From Penicillus capitatus (taxonomy: Eukaryota; Plantae; Chlorophyta): a stretch of DNA of 64,000 nucleotides. Below the pieces are notes generated by a model that was not told where the DNA came from, did no database searches, and saw only the letters and a program-made list of their open reading frames with translations. A program made the translations under genes and the position numbers. Below are positions 1 to 36,922 of the stretch, one piece after another. The first letter of the stretch is position 1. Every line of letters starts with the position of its first letter. The stretch covers positions 62,001-126,000 of the forward strand of contig OZ287710.1 of NCBI GenBank assembly GCA_965649825.1, read 5' to 3'.

Positions 1-3000
1 ATCCTCATGGTATTCAGGTCTACCAAGAGAGGATAAAGAAACAGAAATGCGAAATCGATTTGATAACGGCGCTCGAGACAATGATGGAAACATATGAGAA
101 ACTAGAAGAGATGAGAAAGAAGCAAGATCACGCGACAACATCACTAAAACTGGAGACAGTGGATCGCAAAATGCCTATCCAGAGGAATATGCAGGTTTCA
201 TTTGTTGGACGCATCTTGCTTGCACTGACTTGTCAAACAAACAGAGAAGACACGAGCGACGACTATTGAATGCAGAGAATGAAGAAATCTCCGGGATGCC
301 TCATTTTCCACTACCGTTGCATGAATCTTTCGCCCCTGATGACGGGCCGCTGCCTCGAAGGCTAGAAACAATGTGCCAAGCACATCGGCTAAGGATTTTG
401 GAGATGTCCACAGAGCTTGAAAACATCAAAGACTCTGGCGTTTCGACCACAGAGAGAGCGACATCTCTTCAGGCTTTGCTCGAGGAACTGGGCCCCGTTC
501 CAAAAAGAACTGAACGCGCAAGAGCGAATAATCGATCCGTTCATCACTCTTCTATGAGATCTTCAAACACGCGCTCTGTAGCAATTTGAGCTCATGGACG
601 TCCTTGCTGAAAAATGGATAACATAGGTGAAGCGAACGTCGCAGCTTCTGTGCAAAGAGTTCAGGATCTCTTCAATGAGTGATCTCTCAATGCTAAAGCA
701 CCATGGAACGGTGAAGCCGGAAATCCGCTATCAAGTGGACCTCGTCATTGATGGGCGTCGGGTTGGAGGGACAGCAGCTTCTTACATGCACTCAGGGTTT
801 GAAGCAACGTTCTTTCACGCGTTCAAGTGTGACAATGACGCTCTCTGTGCCCCTCAACGTTTCCATGTGCATTGCACAGAGTTCTGCTGCATGCACAACC
901 AAATCGTATGACGCTAAATCTCTATCAGGCTACTGGGAGAGAAGTGCCAGCTTTGCTCGCTGTCCTCGAAGTGGATGTTCCCAATTCGGTCCCACTCCAA
1001 TCCACCTCCTACGCATTCTCATATCAATCGCTGTCAGCTGGATCTGCAAGCGATGGAGACAAGATGGCGGGCTGGATAGAGATCACAACAGGATGGGAGA
1101 CACCAGAAAAGGGACAGACGATAGAGCGCGAGGCCCTTCATTTGATAGAAAACTCAATTCCAGTTCACGATCAGGATACCACAAGGATACCCAAACCTCC
1201 AAAACACACAGTGCCGGCATTCCGTACCATTAAAGATGGCTCACCGTGCTAAATCTCTTCAGGAGTGCCAAGCAAAAATCGGAGAAATGCACAAGGACGC
1301 TACAGAAGAGCTGGACCAGTCCATTTCCAAAAAGGCTGCGGAGTTAAAGGCGCCTGATCGACATACAGCTAAAAGAACACAGTTCCTCTATCGTCGATGG
1401 AGAGCCATCAACATGGTTAAGAATGGATTACTGAGCGACAGGACTTTGGCGGATATCGCACTGCCATCTCTGGGCTCAGACGATCTGCAATCCATCGACT
1501 ATGCCGAGAAGATCCATACTCTCGACAAATTGATGAACACCTCTTCTGTGACATCTTCGCCGACTCGAACTCTGACAGATGAAGCGGAGAAGTTGTTTCC
1601 AGGTTTGTTCTCACGAGCCGAATGCAGACGCCATTCACAAAGTCTCCTTCAGATTCTCTGCTGCATCGAGAACTGGAGATACGTGATCGGAAGATCGGCG
1701 AATGTGTTATGCAGCTCGAGTCTCTGCTCAGATCGCAAAGAACAGAGTCCCAGACGCAGCTGACGAAAGCAGATATCGTTAAGCAATTTGAATTTCGGCA
1801 CATAACCAGGATTGCGCCGTTGGACCACGCATTCTCTATCCTGCGAAGATCCGTAACCAAGGAACCGGGTATTCAGGTATGGGTATCCGAGAGACTTCTG
1901 TATGCTCATAGACGTGTGCTCTAGACCCAAATGCCTTCCGCTTCTGATGGTGAGCCATACATTGAGATCGAAGTGCGCTCCGCTTTCAATCTCCCCCAAA
2001 GACATCTCTCGTTTCTCAACTCCGAGAGAACAAACAGAACGAGACCATTCGCCGACAGACACAACAGAACTGCACAAGTGTTGTCGCCTTTTGTCGAAGT
2101 CCATCACAATGGAGCGCGCGTTCGGACGTTTGCAGCGTCTGGTGTGGATCCCACATTCAATCAGAAAGCAAGCGCTTTCCCGTGTCTTTACGATCTCCAC
2201 TTTCTCTTTCTCCTTAGATCGAACTTCCTTTTGTTCCCATGGACGGTTCTTTGGCCCCGACGGATTTGATGCAGTCCAAGGATGTCATCGATATCCAAGT
2301 ACTTGATGAATTTCCTGTGTCTTCTGTCAATGCCGAAGGACGCGGAGCGAGAACCGTGTGCGATAGAGAATACCGATTGCTGGGGACATTAGAAATCGCA
2401 GTGGCCAGTGTTTGCCGCATGGGAAAGATAGAAGGCGAACTGAAAATCACGACACCGCCTGTGTTACTCACTTACTGCCAGAGTGCTAAGCCAGCTGTGG
2501 TATCTCTCTCCATTCAGCTGACGCCTCCGCTTTCCGAAAGTGCCAAAACTGATGGTGTCGCTCAACGAGTTCTACCGGGTACAGAAGATTCCTGGCAAAA
2601 GTGAAAAGAGGACTGAAAATTGAGATCAGACTGGATCTTATTGATTTGTAGGTGGATGTCAGATCTCCGTCACGCGAGAAAGTTCGCTGGAAGATCAAGT
2701 GTTGTCTCCTGTACGACCCTCGATGGGCAGAAATCTCTGATCTGTGATCTGATCTCTCCGATAACACTCCCGCCAAACATAGCAGAGAAACTTGATATGA
2801 ATTCTGAACAGTTTTCTGTTATGCTTGACTGTGCCAACTTCGTCAGTACCATTCCTCTGGTGCACGGCAGTCGTTATGCATTTCTGCAAGAGGCAGTCTG
2901 CTTGAGGAATGCAGAACTGTTAGATCTGGCTGCGGGAAGTGGCCGAGAGCACGCTTTTCTTCTGGCTGGCTACTTCGTGCAGCTCGGGATCGAGGTCTGT

Positions 3001-6430: not shown

Positions 6431-8432
6431 ATGGAGAATCCGAGAACGACAACGAAGAGTTACCCGACGGCGGGAGCTCTCTACGTTGGTGATCTCGACG
6501 CATCTGTGGACGAAGGACTTCTCTACCAAATCTTCTCACGCGTATTGCCGTTCCATCGTTTGCCGTTTCGCCAACGTACGAGCGTGCGCGTGCACGCCTG
6601 TGTGTTAATAGTTTGGTCCAATCGCGTCAATTCGCGTCTGCCGCGACTCGGTGTCGCGCAAGAGTTTAGGATATGCCTACGTCAATTTCATCGCCTCTCT
6701 CGATTCCCAAGCGGGTAAGCCAAACGCTGCTGTTGTCTATCAACCGACCACCACCTGGTTTGGTTCAGCGCAAAAAGCAATGGAGGTGTTGAACTACACG
6801 ATGATTCGCAACAGGCCGATGCGTATCATGAAAGCACAAAGAGATTCAGAACTGCGAAGATCGGGAGTTGGCAATATCTTTGTGAAAGGATTGGATGCTG
6901 AAATCGATTCGCGCACATTGCACGATACCTTTGAAGTTTTTGGGTCTATTGCCTCTGCCAAAGTGGCCATGGATGACAGTGGGAATCCACTGGGATATGG
7001 CTACGTTCAATATGAGGCAGAAGAATCGGCTGTTGCAGCAGTGGAGCGTGCAAATGGAATGTTGCTAAAGGGACGGCAACTCTATGTAGCGCCGTATAAA
7101 CCTAAAACAGCACGGATGGCAGCAAAGGGCTTTACCAATCTCTATGTGAAGCACTTTCCACCGTTCGTCGTAGATGACGACTCATTCCGAGATCTCTTTA
7201 AAGATTTGGGCAAAATAACAAGCATCTATCTTCCCAAAGCAAGCATTGGATGTTATGATGAAGGAGTCGATGTGGTGGTGATGGTGAACAGGGTGAAGAT
7301 GGAAAGCATAAAGGATTTGGTTTTGCCAACTTTAGTGACCCTAAAGAAGCAGCAGAAGCTGTGGCAGCTCTCGATAAGAAATCTTTTGACGGAAGTTTAC
7401 TCTACGTTGCGCCAGCGCAAAAGAAAAACTTCAGAACCCGTGTTCTGCGAGACAAGTACGTGGCCTTTGTTATCTCTGTCTGCCTCGTCATCCATCTCTC
7501 TTCTTCTTCTTCAGGTTTGAGCAGATTAAGCGCGAACGGCAACGCAGTTGTCAAGGACGAAACCTTTACATCAAGCATATTAGTTTGGACTTGGAAGACA
7601 AAGACCTCCAGTCCCTGTTTGAGAAATTTGGGACAATCACCAGTGCAAAGATTATGGTTGACGAACAAGGCCAGAGTCGAGGATTTGGGTTTGTCTGCTT
7701 TGCATCCCTCGAAGAAGCATCAAATGCCATGAAAGAAATGAATGGAAAAACCGTAGATGGGCAGCAAATGTATGTGGCAGAGGCACAGAGCAAGGCAGCA
7801 CGCCAGGTTGAACTCTCTCGCATTCGCATGGCGACTTTGGGTCTGGGTGGAATCGGAACGGCACCGTACTCTCAGATGAATCCAGGACTTCTGCAGCCAG
7901 GGACCGTGTGGCCAGGAATGTATGGCTCGCACAATAACTCAGAGGATTTCCAGGGCAGAGGCAGAGGACGTGGAACAGGAGTCATGAGAGGAGGCGCTCG
8001 CGGAGGAGGCCGTTCCATGACAGGAAGAGGCCGCACTCCAGTTTGATCATGCATTCCTCAACCGTAGTGGCATATGTGGTCTGATGTCTGTAGGCTGGGC
8101 GTGGTGACGGAGGGCCGTTCCGTCCGAACTTGCAGCAGAATTCCATGGGGCCATCCACATTCCCTGGTGGAAGCAACTATCTATATCCGAATATCGTGCA
8201 CATGCCTCAGCAGAGCCCCCGGCAGCAGAAAGTTGCTCTTGGGGAGTCTCTGTATCCACATGTCTCGAGTCTGCAGCCGAAGCGCGCAGCCAAGATCACT
8301 GGGATGATCTTGGAGATGCCCAATCATGATGTTGAGGCTTTGTTGCAAGATCCAAATGCTCTACGAGCCAAGGTGGAAGAGGCTGTGGTTGTCTTGAATG
8401 AGAGTGGAGTTATGGATGATGAAGCGGAATAG
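6431..8432 (+). CDS. PABP: Cytoplasmic poly(A)-binding protein (4 RRMs plus MLLE/PABC domain), multi-exon
   Basis: ALYVGDL, SLGYAYVNF, GVGNIFVKGL, FTNLYVK, SRGFGFVCF and KITGMILEM. GC-AG intron 7239-7291 restores IYLPK|GEDGKHKGFGFANF. Confidence 0.97.
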
Positions 8433-30800: not shown

Positions 30801-32067
30801 CGTTGATTCAATGCCACTGCCATAGAGAAGAGAGCACGCTGAGATGTGGGTGTCACGACAAATGCCATGGAAGGAACTTGGTCCGGAATGGCATGTCTTT
30901 GTCTGGCTCTCCTAAGAAACGAACACCGTTCCATGTATTGTCTTTCTCACAGAAAGAGCTCTGTGTCTCAGACGAGGATCTGATTTTTAGTCATCGGCAA
31001 GTGAAGCCTCTTCTAGGCTAGACTTTCATTCAGTTCATCATGGACATAGATAGATAGATGGCCCGACGGCAGATCATGGAAGTACCTCGATGCAGCAACA
31101 GTGACACCGGCAATGGATACGTAATCTGGTGGCAATGCAACACTCTCTTCTGCGTCATCTGTCATGAGTTGCCCCTCAGACAGTAATGAACTCTCTCTGT
31201 CACACTTAGCTGCCATCTCGCTCGATTCTGAGTCTTCGTTGTCGAGTCTCGCATGTCTGTTAGAAAAAACAGGTTCTAGCGATTTTCAGAATCACAGATC
31301 GGGAATCGCACTTGAACGAACAGGATAGGATGGTAGATGTCGGCACTTTGAATTTTTGATACAGCAGCATTTTGGTTTCTTCACTCAAAGCAAGGATTTT
31401 TGCGATTGCTTCAATGCCACACCATCGTATGTTCTCATTCTAAATCCCATCGTCAAACGATAACTCTCGATCTTCTATACGCACCTCATGCATCAGCGTG
31501 GCCTTCCAATCAGCAACATTGCTTAGATAAGGCACTTCCAATGGGATCGCATCCAGGAGGTATAGATATGCATCTTCTTCCGACAAATGACACATAGATT
31601 TCACATCCCCATAGTCAAGAGAGACACATTGAGGTGTTTTTTGGATCAGTTCCTTCACACTTCTACAAGATCATGATGATCTGAACGGACAGCGTTTTGA
31701 AAAGGTTATGAACCTTTTGAGGGTAGGAAATCGGCGATACACTCGACACAAGGCGACGGTCACCAAAAGAGAAGGGACACTCTTGGACAGCGCCTTCAGT
31801 CCTCGGGGCAGCAGCGCGATCAGGTGCGGGGCAAAGCACTGCAACGTGACACGTGTCGTGGATGGCACCACGAGCCCCTTAGCGAAGATCTGAACAACAA
31901 CCGGCGCGTCTATATCTTCGTCGTCCTATAGGCACTCCGCCTCCATCCACGAACGCTCTCTACCGTCATATGGAATGGACCAGGAGATCGTGCCTCTCCA
32001 CGACGTCGCGATAGGCTGCCGTTGCTCGAAATCGCTCGAGACATTGGTGCAGAGTAGGACACGCCAT
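12852..32067 (-). CDS. MDN1: Midasin (Rea1), AAA-ATPase for pre-60S maturation, roughly 25-30 exons
   Basis: Six AAA modules (LLEGPP|GCGKT, GETGTGKT, QGPTSSGKT, GDTGTGKT, EGSPGVGKT, GPSSSGKT), LDELNLA repeats, PWEFNLRDFLR|W, a long linker, a D/E-rich region and a C-terminal MIDAS domain (AIDDSKSM). Exons were traced across all ORF-track breaks. Start MACPTLHQCLERF is inferred. Confidence 0.98.
22723..22795 (-). ncRNA. Box C/D snoRNA candidate, target unknown (MDN1 intron 22704-23043)
   Basis: Minus strand: C box ATGATGA (22783-22789), internal D' ATGA and C' ATGATT, D box CTGA (22727-22730). No terminal stem and no recognised rRNA complement. Confidence 0.6.
22802..22879 (-). ncRNA. Box C/D snoRNA, predicted guide for LSU rRNA Am807 (yeast numbering; snR39/snR59, U51 type)
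   Basis: 7-bp terminal stem TGTCTGA/TCAGACA, C-like ATGATGC, 12-nt guide CACCATCTTTCG complementary to conserved LSU CGAAAGAUGGUG, D' ATGA and D CTGA (22809-22812). The D'+5 rule lands on the A equivalent to yeast A807. Confidence 0.88.
22895..22975 (-). ncRNA. Box C/D snoRNA, predicted guide for SSU rRNA Am541 (yeast numbering; snR41/U62 type)
   Basis: C box ATGATGA (22964-22970) and D CTGA (22899-22902), preceded by CAATTGTTCCT, complementary to 18S AGGAACAAUUG. D+5 lands on the A541 equivalent. Confidence 0.8.
24368..24458 (-). ncRNA. Box C/D snoRNA, predicted guide for LSU Gm805 (snR39B/SNORD2 type) and possibly an 18S Cm (human Cm174 equivalent); MDN1 intron 24310-24483
   Basis: Flanking stem GCATTTC/GAAATGC, C box ATGATGA (24441-24447), 13-nt guide ACCATCTTTCGGG before D' ATGA (D'+5 = G805 equivalent). 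A 10-nt TGCACGTATT before D CTGA (24378-24381) is complementary to plant-type 18S AAUACGUGCA. Confidence 0.9.
29214..29341 (-). ncRNA. Box H/ACA snoRNA, 3' hairpin predicted to guide pseudouridine in LSU helix 69 (yeast 2258; snR191/U19 type); MDN1 intron 29171-29379
   Basis: Hairpin 1 (CTTGG/CCAAG, TCATGC/GCATGA), H box AAATAA (29278-29283), hairpin 2 (CAGA/TCTG base, TTCAGATTC/GAATCTGAA top), then ACA plus 3 nt. Pocket AGTCA + GTTAC pairs with GUAAC-UA-UGACU, 14 nt from ACA. Confidence 0.85.
30457..30544 (-). ncRNA. Box C/D snoRNA, U18/snR18 type, predicted LSU Am649 guide (MDN1 intron 30452-30771)
   Basis: Stem CAAGG/CCTTG, C box ATGATGA (30531-30537), 14-nt guide CTTGGTCCGTGTTT complementary to LSU AAACACGGACCAAG and D CTGA (30464-30467). 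The D' box is degenerate (TGTA). Confidence 0.88.
30556..30634 (-). ncRNA. Box C/D snoRNA candidate, target unknown (MDN1 intron 30452-30771)
   Basis: Terminal stem GAATC/GATTC closing C-like CTGATGA (30622-30628) and D CTGA (30561-30564). Lies between two recognisable snoRNAs. Confidence 0.65.
30640..30727 (-). ncRNA. Box C/D snoRNA, snR38/SNORD1 type, predicted LSU Gm2815 guide (MDN1 intron 30452-30771)
   Basis: Stem AAAGGC/GTCTTT, C box ATGATGA (30714-30720), 12-nt guide CCAGTTATCCCT complementary to LSU AGGGAUAACUGG, D' CTGA (D'+5 = G2815 equivalent) and D CTGA (30646-30649). Confidence 0.9.
30964..31046 (-). ncRNA. Box C/D snoRNA candidate, target uncertain (MDN1 intron 30912-31085)
   Basis: Stem TGTC/GACA, C box ATGATGA (31035-31041), D' ATGA and D CTGA (30968-30971). 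Splicing out the whole 174 bp joins TVAASR|RARQRH in frame. Confidence 0.72.
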
Positions 32068-32165
32068 GTGAGTGGAGCCGCCAACGATGCGCTCAAATGC
32101 AGAGAGATGAGAAGGGAGAGCGATGTGACGTGTGAGGTGACGACTTTGAGGAGGAGAAAGGGAGA

Positions 32166-32950
32166 ATGGACTGTCTTGGCCAGTCAAGATGCGGCATCTC
32201 ATGTCGACAGTTCTTTCGAAGAATTCTGTCTTCTGACGTCTCGCGCCGACCTCCTGTCCTCTGCATTGGACTCAAAGAAAGACCGATGATGCCCATTCGA
32301 TCGCGTTGATCCTGAGCATTAGGGTTCTGGAAAGACAGAACTCATGCAGAGCATGCAAAGATCCAAGGAGGATCCATATCCACATGAACAGAGACCTCCT
32401 CTGCCAACCATCGGCGTGGAGTATCACGTGCTAAGAGATCCAAAGAATACCAGAAGATCTGTCACTGTCAAGTTTGTTCGATATATTTCTGACAGCTTCC
32501 TTAGCTGAACAGCGCGAGCTATTGTTAGAGAGGTGGGCGGGCTGATGAGGAGCACATGGCCAAAGTACTATCATCAGGAACACTCAGCCATTCTCTTCGT
32601 CATCGATGCAGCCGATGCTGTCAATGCCACCATTGCCATGACAGAACTGCAAAAAATCGTCCATCATCCAGATCTCAAGGTCACCCATCCACCTCTCTCA
32701 CTCTCTATCTACACATAGAGTGCAGCACGTGCCAGTGGCCGTCGCTCTGAACAAGGCAGATCTGCCGTTCACTTTGCAACACGCAGAGATGGATGCCTTG
32801 GCTTTAGCAACTCTAGGAAAGAGGTTCATGTTCAACAGAGATCGTCACATCACGTCTTTCATCACATCTGCTTATGAGCAGGGGCATTATTCTTCGCTGC
32901 TTCATTGGCTCATTAAGACGACATCTACTCAAAACGCGAGAGCTCTGTGA
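32166..32950 (+). CDS. ARL16: ARF-like small GTPase ARL16, 4 exons, first intron apparently GA-AG
   Basis: PVLCIGLK|GSGKT (P-loop), PTIGVE, K|EVGGLMRSTWPKYY (ARL16-type switch II, EVGG in place of DxxG), ILFVIDAAD and VALNKADLP. Confidence 0.88.
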
Positions 32951-34157: not shown

Positions 34158-36922
34158 ATGCGACTCGCATTCGCGCTTGAAACGCTGATGCCTGCGATGA
34201 CGCCTCTACGTGCGACGACACGGATCGTCGATTTCCCTCGTTTACGACGTCCATCTCGACGGCACTCCTCCCGACGCGAAGCTGTCGGCCATTCGAACGA
34301 CGCACAGAGCGTCTCGTTGCCGAGTCCTGTCCAACGAGAGGGTCCCAGCACGGATGCTGATGTGATCTGGAGCCGCCTGCAGAGACTGGCGTTGCCGTAC
34401 TGGACGGATGCTGAAGTGGGATCACGTGCTCGGTGGCGTCTGGCAGGCGTTGTTGCCCTGACGCTCGCTACGACGGGCATCAGGTAGTGTCCTGTTTACC
34501 CACTCCCGTTCGGCATCGTACAGGATGTCTGCAGTGTTGGTTTTAATTTTATGGGTCGCGATTTTTTCAACGCCCTCTCAGAGAAGAACGTCGAGCAATT
34601 CACAACGCAACTCGTTAAATACTTGGCCGTTTTTCTCGCCGGGATTCCTGTCTTCGTCTTCCGCACATACTTCCAGGTGGAGACATTGCCCAAAATCTTT
34701 GTTGACTGTGTCTAGTGTGTACTTTAATTTCACGGCGCGAGATTTTTACAATGCCCTGGATGCCAGAGATAACGTAGAGCTGCGGATTCAACTGTTCCGA
34801 TTCTTCATGGGGACGTTGATCGGAACACCAGTCTTTGTTTTCAGTCGTTATGGAAAGGTCTTTACACCATACACACTCTTATCTCACACTTCTGCATGGC
34901 ATGGGCTACTCTATGAACATTGTCCTGATGCAGAACACTCTGGCGAATGACTGGAGGGAATGGATGGCCGAAAAGTTTGTCTCGGATTACTTGGACAATC
35001 GAACGTTCTATCAAGTGCAGTCCACCGCCGCCTTTGACAATCCAGATCAGAGGATTTCAATTGACGTTCGGTAAATCTCTTACAGATGATGGCGGTGTGC
35101 GTGTTGAGATGGGGATGTTGCTGGATTAGGGTGTTTACAGAAACGGCATTGGGGTTTGTGTTGACGCTGTTAAATGCCTTCATCGATCTCGTGTCCTTCT
35201 CTGAAATCCTGTTCTCCATCTATCCGCCGCTGTTTGTAGCATTGGTTGTCTACTCCGTCGGTGGAACATGGTTGTCTGTCATTATTGGTCGAGTGCGTTT
35301 TGACAGATACGGGCCAACAGTGGTGATCGATGCCGACTGCTGTGTAGAAACTGGTAGGACTGAACTTTCGACAAGAAGCAAAGGAAGCAGATTTTCGTTT
35401 TGGCCTTGTCCGAATACGGGAGAACGCTGAGAGCATCGCCTTCTATAGCGGAGAGAAGAAGGAGCAGAATGTGCTGCTAGAGGTGGTTCCCTCAACTCCC
35501 TCCCTCTCACACATCCCTCTCGCGTTGGATTTAGAGATTGCAAAAAGCCATTCTAAATTACAAAGATTTGCTGGTGGCTTCGAGGAATTTGGACTTCTTC
35601 ACCACCTACTATCGATATTTAATTCAGCTGCTGCCAGCGGCTGTCGTGTCACCTATTTTCTTCAAGGGAGAGATTGGATTCGGTGTGGTCACACAGAGTG
35701 CTTCTGCTTTCAGTCACATCTTATCTGACGTCTCGCTTGTCGTCTATCAAGTCTGCCATTCTGACAACACTGTCCTACGTGACTCTCGTACCCAATGCAC
35801 AGTTTGAAGCACTAGCAGGGTTCAGTGCCGTCGTCGATCGCCTGGGAGAGTTTGCAGAGACGGTGGATGCCTTGAAGGAAAAATCTGCGTCTCCTGTGGG
35901 AGAGAAAATCGAGTTGAAATCGCAAAACCCACCAGAGAAGCCGGAACAACCATTACTCAAAGTGGAAAACTTGACACTCTTAACGCCGGATACACGTTCC
36001 GTGCTCATCGAAGATCTCAGCTTCGAAGTGAGATAGATTTCTCTCGTGTCTTCAAGTCTGGTCGGGTCTCCTTCGTTAGGTCTCGCAAAAACGGTCGTTG
36101 CTGATCATGGGACCCAGTGGTGCAGGAAAGACATCCCTGCTGCGTGCCATTGCTGGATTGTGGTCCTCCGGTAGCGGATCCATCACACGATACGGCAGTC
36201 CAATTGATGCAAAGAACCAGAGGGGCAACATCATGTTTGTTCCGCAGAAACCCTATCTCGTTTTGGGAACTCTTAGAGATCAACTGCTGTATCCCACATG
36301 GGCCAATGGAGTCGCCCCCACCCATATCAACCGTCAGTCTGGCCTTCTGCACTTCTAGCATTCCTGACGGGAGTCATGGGGTATAGATGACGGCAAGGAA
36401 AGACCCGTCCCAAACGACATGGAGTTAGAGAAGGCAATGCTAAATGTGAATCTTGGCGATGTCTTGCAGAGATGTAGAGAAGGTATAGGCATTGATGAGA
36501 AATGCATGGATCTATACAAGTCGAGATGTTGTAGCATCTGCGGGATCCAATGCACTGGATACAGTGACAGATTGGTCGAGCCAGCTGTCTGTTGGGGAGC
36601 AACAGAGACTAGCATTTGCTCGGATTTTGCTCTCTTCTCCTCAACTGCTGCTCATGGATGAATCGACCAGTGCATTAGACATCACGAACGAGCAAGCTCT
36701 GTACAAGGTTCATTCAGCATTGGTGTCTTCGCAATCTGTTCTCCTGAATGGGTCATCTGTCTTTAGTTATTGTCGGATGCTGGTATTTCTTATATCAGTG
36801 TTGGACATCGACCATCGCTCAAGGGCTTCCACAGTCATTCGTTGCATCTAATGCCTGCTGTAGAGGAAGGCCAAGGCGCAAAGTGGTCTATTGATGATCT
36901 CACTATGGCGTCATCTACTTAA
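34158..36922 (+). CDS. ABC transporter subfamily D, plastid ABCD2-like half transporter, with two alternative paralogous exons
   Basis: Transit-peptide-like N-terminus, [42 protein letters not shown] (EAA motif), Walker [30 protein letters not shown] and SVGHR. Confidence 0.95.
34535..34676 (+). other. ABCD alternative exon A (142 bp)
   Basis: CAG acceptor in phase 2, CAG|GT donor in phase 0. Encodes [47 protein letters not shown]. Confidence 0.9.
34716..34857 (+). other. ABCD alternative exon B (142 bp), paralogous to exon A
   Basis: TAG acceptor in phase 2, AAG|GT donor in phase 0. Encodes [47 protein letters not shown], 20/47 identical to exon A. Confidence 0.85.

Follow-up and report, generated by a model that had tools for sequence, protein, structure and literature searches.

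The 64 kb window analysed here, that is, the whole stretch of 64,000 nucleotides under study, is eukaryotic DNA with about 48% G+C and many short introns. Two of its genes lie head to head, with their start codons about 100 nt apart: a very large midasin gene on the reverse strand (about 12.8-32.07 kb) and, on the forward strand, a gene assigned below to the small GTPase ARL16 (32166-32950). The upstream region common to both (about 32065-32166) is 92% identical between the window species and a related organism, referred to throughout as species B, and is more conserved than the introns. The window also encodes an ABCD-type transporter, a PP2C, an ArfGAP, a mitochondrial phage-type RNA polymerase, an SR-type splicing factor and a Mei2-like RRM protein; for a number of them the assignment comes from translations of open reading frames and not from Pfam matches. 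A search of the whole window against Rfam gave no tRNA, snRNA or other RNA family above threshold, and it likewise recognised none in the related loci.

The putative ARL16 gene is composed of four exons, all on the forward strand. Exon 1 (32166-32276) encodes a Cys-rich N-terminus, strand β1 (VLCIG) and the beginning of the P-loop (G35-L-K37), and ends in phase 0; its final 38 nt are the same in the two species. It is followed by a 46-nt segment (32277-32322, GAAAGACCGA...CTGAGCATTAG) with a non-canonical GA donor and an AG end. Exon 2 (32323-32471) contributes GSGKT, the remaining part of the P-loop, together with helix α1 and the G-2 motif PTIG. Intron 2 (32472-32528) is a GT-AG intron of 57 nt with a 2-nt indel relative to species B, and it precedes exon 3 (32529-32679), which encodes the G-3 motif KEVGGL and the segment WPKYY. 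Intron 3 (32680-32725), also GT-AG, has 46 nt and a 1-nt indel relative to species B. Finally, exon 4 (32726-32950) carries the G-4 motif NKAD and the C-terminal helix, and finishes at a TGA stop codon (32948-32950) that is the same in species B.

If exon 1 is not spliced, the frame opened by ATG 32166 reads MDCLGQSRCGISCRQFFRRILSSDVSRRPPVLCIGLKERPMMPIRSR and then finds a stop; reading through the 46-nt segment in this plus-strand frame leads from MDCLGQSRCGISCRQFFRRILSSDVSRRPPVLCIGLK into ERPMMPIRSR and the stop codon. The open frame ends after ...GLKERPMMPIRSR unless positions 32277-32322 are spliced out. Immediately downstream of CATTAG, which ends at 32322, the codons GGT TCT GGA AAG ACA encode GSGKT, and the removal of the 46 nt from GA to AG joins ...VLCIGLK to GSGKT, giving rise to VLCIGLKGSGKT. 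The initial annotation had described the interruption after ...RRPPVLCIGLK and the GxxxxGKT motif obtained by this removal in the same terms, and both are borne out. The intron is in phase 0: the codon for K37 precedes it and that for G38 follows. Once all three introns have been taken out, an ORF of 211 aa is obtained. It has to be noted that, with G at both 32277 and 32323, a rightward shift of the two borders by one position (AA...GG) would produce an identical mRNA; only the GA-AG version of the borders has a canonical acceptor.

The spliced product is recognised by Pfam as a member of the Arf family (69.7 bits), and its best solved structure is ARL6, whose sequence VLCLGLDNSGKT aligns across the spliced junction. 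A word-indexed protein search with the spliced ARL16 returned no match, and an exhaustive HMMER search gave, as top full-length matches, proteins of about 200 aa, one of which, from Tetraselmis, is named ARL16 by UniRef. In an alignment of the spliced protein with ten of these ARL16-family matches there is no gap at the K37/G38 junction, residues V31, L32, G35, G40 and K41 are invariant, and the family shares the consensus sequences VLxxGxEGSGKT and REVGGxM. With respect to the motif definitions GX4GKT, PTxG and NKxD (PMC9250359), the protein has G-1 as GLKGSGKT, present only after splicing, G-2 as PTIG and G-4 as NKAD. In ARL16, the characteristic G-3 sequence RELGGC replaces WDXGGQ, and cysteines are common at the N-terminus (PMC9250359). 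The protein encoded here has KEVGGL at this position, which is devoid of the Trp, Asp and Gln of WDXGGQ and corresponds to the ARL16 type. In its homologues the residue after REVGG varies (Gln in some of them, and Cys, Ser, Asn or Pro in the others) and the next one is mostly Met. Several cysteines are also found at the N-terminus of the protein encoded here. Thus, the KEVGGL motif, the N-terminal cysteines and the match named ARL16 by UniRef support, at the level of sequence, the assignment of the gene as ARL16. An AlphaFold model built on the ARL16 alignment has a mean pLDDT of 81.6, reaching 92-96 for residues 31-50 (β1, P-loop and α1); the spliced product is predicted by this model to fold as a small GTPase, with the junction inside a high-confidence P-loop. 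The collections searched contained no sequence of this ARL16 gene derived from a transcript, nor a spliced, cDNA-derived protein of the gene or of a close relative.

GA is among the rarest donor variants, and most of the reported cases are annotation or sequencing artefacts. A miscall of base 32278 in a true GT donor would be the simplest explanation of this kind, since a single T-to-A change would suffice to separate the site from a canonical one. Public long-read metagenome contigs, reached through a midasin exon of the window, bear directly on this point. A contig of 493 kb from ERZ25074695 (L001/L006) matches the window at 99.3% identity along 22.7 kb (window positions 14775-37516), and two contigs from ERZ26696514 (L004 and L005, of 959 kb and 2.24 Mb), which are 99% identical to each other and collinear with the window, to which each is 86-87% identical, represent species B. 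The donor CTCAAA/GAAAGACCGA and the acceptor CTGAGCATTAG/GGTTCTGG (the slash marks the exon-intron border here and below) are identical in the window, L001/L006, L004 and L005, and the coverage given in the names of the independent contigs that carry A at 32278 is 47x and about 180x. The presence of the same GA donor in four assemblies from two species excludes an assembly error for practical purposes, and the probability of a miscall has to be regarded as negligible when four separately assembled contigs, from two ENA assemblies and two species, share the A at these coverages. A T/A error at 32278 had been named in the initial annotation as an outcome that would overturn its reading, and the independent long-read contigs speak against it; the orthologous intron of a relative, to which it had also pointed, keeps the GA donor in both species B contigs. 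The window and L001 diverge by 0.7%, and L004 and L005, from one and the same assembly, by ~1%; these pairs are probably haplotypes of heterozygous diploids or co-occurring strains.

Comparison of the two species is also informative on the segment itself, which is one base longer in species B (47 nt, L004 3558-3604) than in the window species (46 nt). The two versions are separated by six substitutions and a single indel, all of them central: neither the first 10 nt nor the last 11 nt differ, and the exon bases on either side are also unchanged. As a consequence of this 1-base difference in length, one of the two species at most could be translated in frame through the segment, and in both of them its removal leads to the 211-aa ORF with the same stop. 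The GA intron is 85% identical between species, as against 65% for its GT neighbour intron 2 and 72% for intron 3, and this higher conservation would fit an extra constraint on a weak intron, in what is a single case.

The possibility that the gene is a pseudogene, or that exon 1 is foreign to it and the reconstruction of the P-loop is fortuitous, could find some ground in the fact that exon 1 is the least conserved ARL16 exon (79% identity). Against it, the indels of this exon are of 3 nt only, and thus multiples of three, the spliced ORF is intact with a shared stop in both species, and the junction fits the ARL16 family alignment exactly. Furthermore, the spliced ORFs of the two species differ by 29 synonymous and 21 non-synonymous codon changes, which, with roughly three times more non-synonymous sites available, points to purifying selection. 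Taken together with the rest of the evidence, this makes a pseudogene or a chance junction extremely improbable.

Members of the clade to which the window species belongs were encountered only in assemblies derived from metagenomes and from SRA data, with PABP identities of 56-82%. The search for the ARL16 locus was extended to a more distant relative (L003), in which it was not found, and to two JGI metagenome scans, which gave either nothing or just a distant ARL16 without an intron in the P-loop. The latter (L009, JGI contig Ga0194135_10128302, positions 120-380) is 28% identical and carries its P-loop, LCLGPQGSGKS, in a single uninterrupted exon, and so the position of the P-loop intron is not universal in the ARL16 family.

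Two GT dinucleotides in exon 1 (32238-32257, forward strand) have to be considered as alternative donors: GAC/GTCTCG at 32238 and CCT/GTCCTC at 32256, located 39 and 21 nt upstream of the GA, respectively, and both in frame with the acceptor at 32322. According to this explanation, transcripts would use one of these sites with the same acceptor, the GA would never be used, and a protein without β1 would be made. Both dinucleotides are kept in species B, as Val codons, and the sites look no worse than many real donors of the window, GTCCTC and GTCTCG resembling GTCCAT and GTCACC, which are used here. In addition, the shortened proteins are still above the Pfam threshold for Arf, with 59.6 or 63.9 bits versus 69.7 bits, although their matches are shorter and start 6-12 profile positions later. 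However, splicing from 32256 or 32238 removes V31, L32 and G35, three positions that never vary in the ARL16 alignment and that correspond to β1 and the first glycine of the P-loop, as the initial annotation had anticipated for both sites. Moreover, the 21 nt from 32256 to 32276, which show 100% identity between the two species, translate exactly into the family consensus VLxxGxx, and the resulting introns would have 67 or 85 nt, lengths that are less typical here and exceed the main class of 45-62 nt. On these sequence grounds, the use of the upstream GT sites for a functional mRNA is unlikely, and the exclusive use of one of them clearly so; minor use may occur.

The GA intron has to be seen in the context of splicing in this genome. 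A two-species Viterbi gene finder, applied to 37.5 kb of the window aligned to two merged species B loci, delivered 42 high-confidence GT-AG introns, each of them conserved in both species. These introns are short, mostly 45-67 nt with a mode of about 50 nt, and their signals consist of a weak donor consensus (AG/GTnnGT) and an acceptor of the form T-n-YAG/G; no clear branch-site consensus was found in the introns beyond a mild enrichment of TCATC. With the donor left free to be any of the 16 dinucleotides, the gene finder distributed its non-GT calls evenly over the different types, at noise level, which makes automatic counting of GC or GA donors unreliable here. Codon-usage maps of ORFs, brute-force two-species lists of candidates and motif-anchored scans were equally unable to count them. 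Thus, the set retained comprises the high-confidence GT-AG introns and those non-GT introns that were validated singly by homology, which in an incomplete census of 37 kb amounts to 42-55 GT-AG introns versus three GC donors and one GA donor.

The three GC-AG introns are located in different genes. The one in midasin (24822-24777, reverse strand) has 46 nt, AAG/GCAAGG...CATAG, and its splicing restores NLRDFLR/W, the Trp being found in 55 of 58 midasin homologues, with the three exceptions corresponding to unspliced ORFs of the same clade. At the same midasin position, the more distant relative L003 (62% identical) has a 44-nt GT-AG intron with the donor GTTTAT, which indicates that the base at +2 has changed within the clade. 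The second (2168-2217, forward strand; 50 nt, AAA/GCAAGC) belongs to a C2-like gene, so assigned from sequence motifs and not from Pfam, and joins DPTFNQK/IELPFVP; in species B this segment is shortened by an internal deletion of 4 nt. The third (7239-7291, forward strand; 53 nt, AAA/GCAAGC), in a PABP gene, joins ITSIYLPK/GEDGKHKGFGFANF, a junction that matches ITSIYLPKGDDGKPKGFGFANF in a related protein, and the segment contains an in-frame stop in species B.

AAG stands at positions +3 to +5 in the GA donor and in each of the three validated GC donors, versus 4 of the 42 GT donors; the initial annotation had seen it in the GA donor and in three of its five GC donors. As a statistic this enrichment is not clean, since it was a scan for GCAAG that brought up two of the three GC introns. 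With the same bias of sampling, three GC-AG introns among roughly 60 (about 5%) would be several-fold above the usual share, which is about 1% of introns. In GC-AG introns the weak +2 position is offset, as a rule, by stronger pairing at other donor positions, and the AAG at non-GT donors, set against its low frequency at GT donors, fits such an offset.

Two further candidates were rejected. In the ABCD gene, a GC donor at 34905 was discarded in favour of a GT-AG intron (34858-34933) which gives a nine-residue spacing between Tyr and Trp, a spacing that presumably matches that of the related ABC transporter YddA of E. coli. The other candidate is a second one of the GA type, located in midasin (15528-15463, reverse strand; CAG/GAAAGC, 66 nt, 67% identity between species). 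It was not accepted because it falls in a long, open, fast-evolving acidic stretch, contains no stop and has a length divisible by three; it may simply be fast-evolving coding sequence.

Mechanisms other than removal by the major spliceosome have also been weighed. The segment could be a degenerate U12-type intron, it could be spliced after RNA editing of A at +2 to U, or it could be skipped by translational bypass. U12-type introns are defined by the donor RTATCCTT and a branch site TCCTTAAC located 10-20 nt from the 3' end. The 5' end of the segment, GAAAGACC, has no similarity to such a donor, and only TCCTGAG, near the 3' end, is loosely like a U12 branch site; in the window, no RTATCCT site is accompanied by a match to the U12 branch site that lies about 15 nt or less before a plausible 3' end. 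A U12-type reading was rejected in view of this donor and of the absence of convincing U12 signals in the window, even when it is taken into account that human ARL16 is among the genes with a minor, U12-type intron, whose splicing is disturbed on loss of ZCRB1 (PMC13216214). The segment can fold as a hairpin in both species (-9.7 and -12 kcal/mol), but the z-scores are weak (-1.5 and -2.4) and compensatory changes are absent. With regard to bypass, there is neither a pair of take-off and landing codons nor an adjacent stop as in the known cases. Its length and its AG end are, moreover, like those of the ordinary neighbouring introns. Altogether, these non-U2 routes are very unlikely.

The hairpin would pair AUGCxCA with UGAGCAU, its stem covering the CUGAG just upstream of the acceptor, and in species B this stem is fully paired owing to a C-to-U change (-12 kcal/mol, z = -2.4). 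Euglenid-type non-conventional introns have variable borders and a base pairing that joins the two intron ends. The segment studied here does not behave in this way: the hairpin is internal, the first 10 nt are unpaired, and the z-scores are only -1.5 and -2.4.

Taking all of this into account, positions 32277-32322 are, with high probability, a genuine U2-type spliceosomal GA-AG intron, located in phase 0 between K37 and G38 of a probable ARL16 orthologue. The G at +1, the AG at the 3' end and a length of 46 nt, within the range of the neighbouring introns (mostly 45-67 nt), are those of a U2-type intron. Judging from the two genomic sequences, a normal small GTPase is encoded only when the 46 nt are cut out to the exact base, and both the GA donor and this requirement are kept in the sister species. 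The claim of the initial annotation that ARL16 needs a GA-AG intron to build β1 and the P-loop is thereby upheld by comparative genomics, with a conserved donor, a 1-nt internal indel, an intact ORF under selection and an exact fit of the junction. Four assemblies of two species and an invariant protein motif make this a clean natural example of GA-AG, in a gene unable to work without the precise removal of its intron; it is a new instance of a rare, already known type of splice site.

The most likely mechanism would be removal by the major spliceosome, the donor being recognised through G at +1 and the A, A and G at +3, +4 and +5, with this AAG pairing with U1 and later with U6. With the A at -2 included, some five base pairs with the 5' end of a standard U1 would be possible, which exceeds what many GT donors of this genome can form. 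Donors here would carry very little information beyond G at +1 and T at +2, and the distance of 46 nt between the GA donor and the acceptor would correspond to the preferred length, in contrast to the 67 and 85 nt that would result from the upstream GT sites. The same G-N-AAG rule appears to be visible in the three validated GC-AG introns.

The initial annotation had also suggested that this spliceosome tolerates variation at +2, a suggestion that stands in part: three GCAAG introns and one GA intron are in its favour, while at least 42 GT-AG introns show that GT dominates. A relaxed +2 position in this lineage is thus weakly supported, and there is a hint that G-N-AAG donors are used more freely than in most eukaryotes. 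A stronger proposal would be an either/or rule for the 5' site, in which either T at +2 or AAG at +3 to +5 would suffice when joined to a length ruler of ~50 nt. Under it, GC-AG introns would reach several times their usual share (about 5% here) and GA-AG introns would form a regular, constitutively spliced class; this is rather doubtful at present. If it were true, it would imply an independent origin of relaxed donors outside tunicates, copepods and dinoflagellates. In any case, the GA and GCAAG introns provide a testable G-N-AAG rule for a minimal-donor spliceosome facing a base other than T at +2. On the practical side, gene finders restricted to GT and GC donors will mis-annotate this ARL16, as a truncated or β1-less protein, and probably other genes of the lineage too.

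The intron can be compared with the non-canonical donors described in other organisms. A at +2 is far rarer than C and is considered the more damaging of the two for catalysis. In this the GA donor differs from those of GC-AG introns with a reinforced donor, with which it shares AAG at +3 to +5 (GAAAG in one case here, GCAAG in three). Very short introns are a feature of Oikopleura dioica as well. In this species and in Eurytemora affinis, GA-AG introns are unusually common, with an exonic AG before the donor and an A after it (PMC7072748). The intron of ARL16 resembles them in its GA donor, the A at +3, the normal AG acceptor, its location in a protein-coding gene and the presumed participation of the major spliceosome (PMC7072748). 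In these two species, however, GA-AG introns outnumber GC-AG introns, represent about 3% of the supported junctions in one of them and have a conserved exonic AG (PMC7072748), whereas here the exon side is AAA, a single GA intron has been established and GC-AG is the commoner type. A U1 whose 5' end is altered so as to pair with A at +2 has been proposed for E. affinis. The host of the intron of ARL16 is probably not an animal, since the window encodes a Mei2-like RRM protein, of a family that is not known from animals. The GA-AG introns of human FGFR genes are likewise found in an otherwise GT-AG genome, and their ends are efficiently used (cited in PMC7072748), but they depend on a canonical GT six nt upstream, and in ARL16 there is no GT within the 20 nt upstream of the GA.

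In dinoflagellates, GC and GA are standard donors, and in one group of them, the Symbiodiniaceae, GC-AG and GA-AG donors account for 25-74% of introns (PMC7789003 Table 1, PMC12584245). As in these organisms, the +2 position may be T, C or A in combination with a standard AG acceptor. Unlike in them, GT is dominant here, with at least 42 GT versus three GC and one GA donors validated; a donor usage relaxed to the dinoflagellate degree does not agree with the small share of GC and GA in the 37 kb covered by this incomplete census. A relic of the dinoflagellate spliced leader was sought in the window and none was found. If the either/or rule held and the host were a myzozoan, the situation could represent an early stage of the dinoflagellate condition.

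The figures for Perkinsus marinus are 47.4% GC, a median intron length of 49 nt and 0.7% of GC/GA-AG introns. The architecture observed here, with about 48% G+C, introns of ~50 nt and few GC or GA donors, is closer to that of P. marinus than to that of the Symbiodiniaceae. No Perkinsus proteins appear among the top named matches, and the best named matches of midasin and PABP are 41-47% identical.
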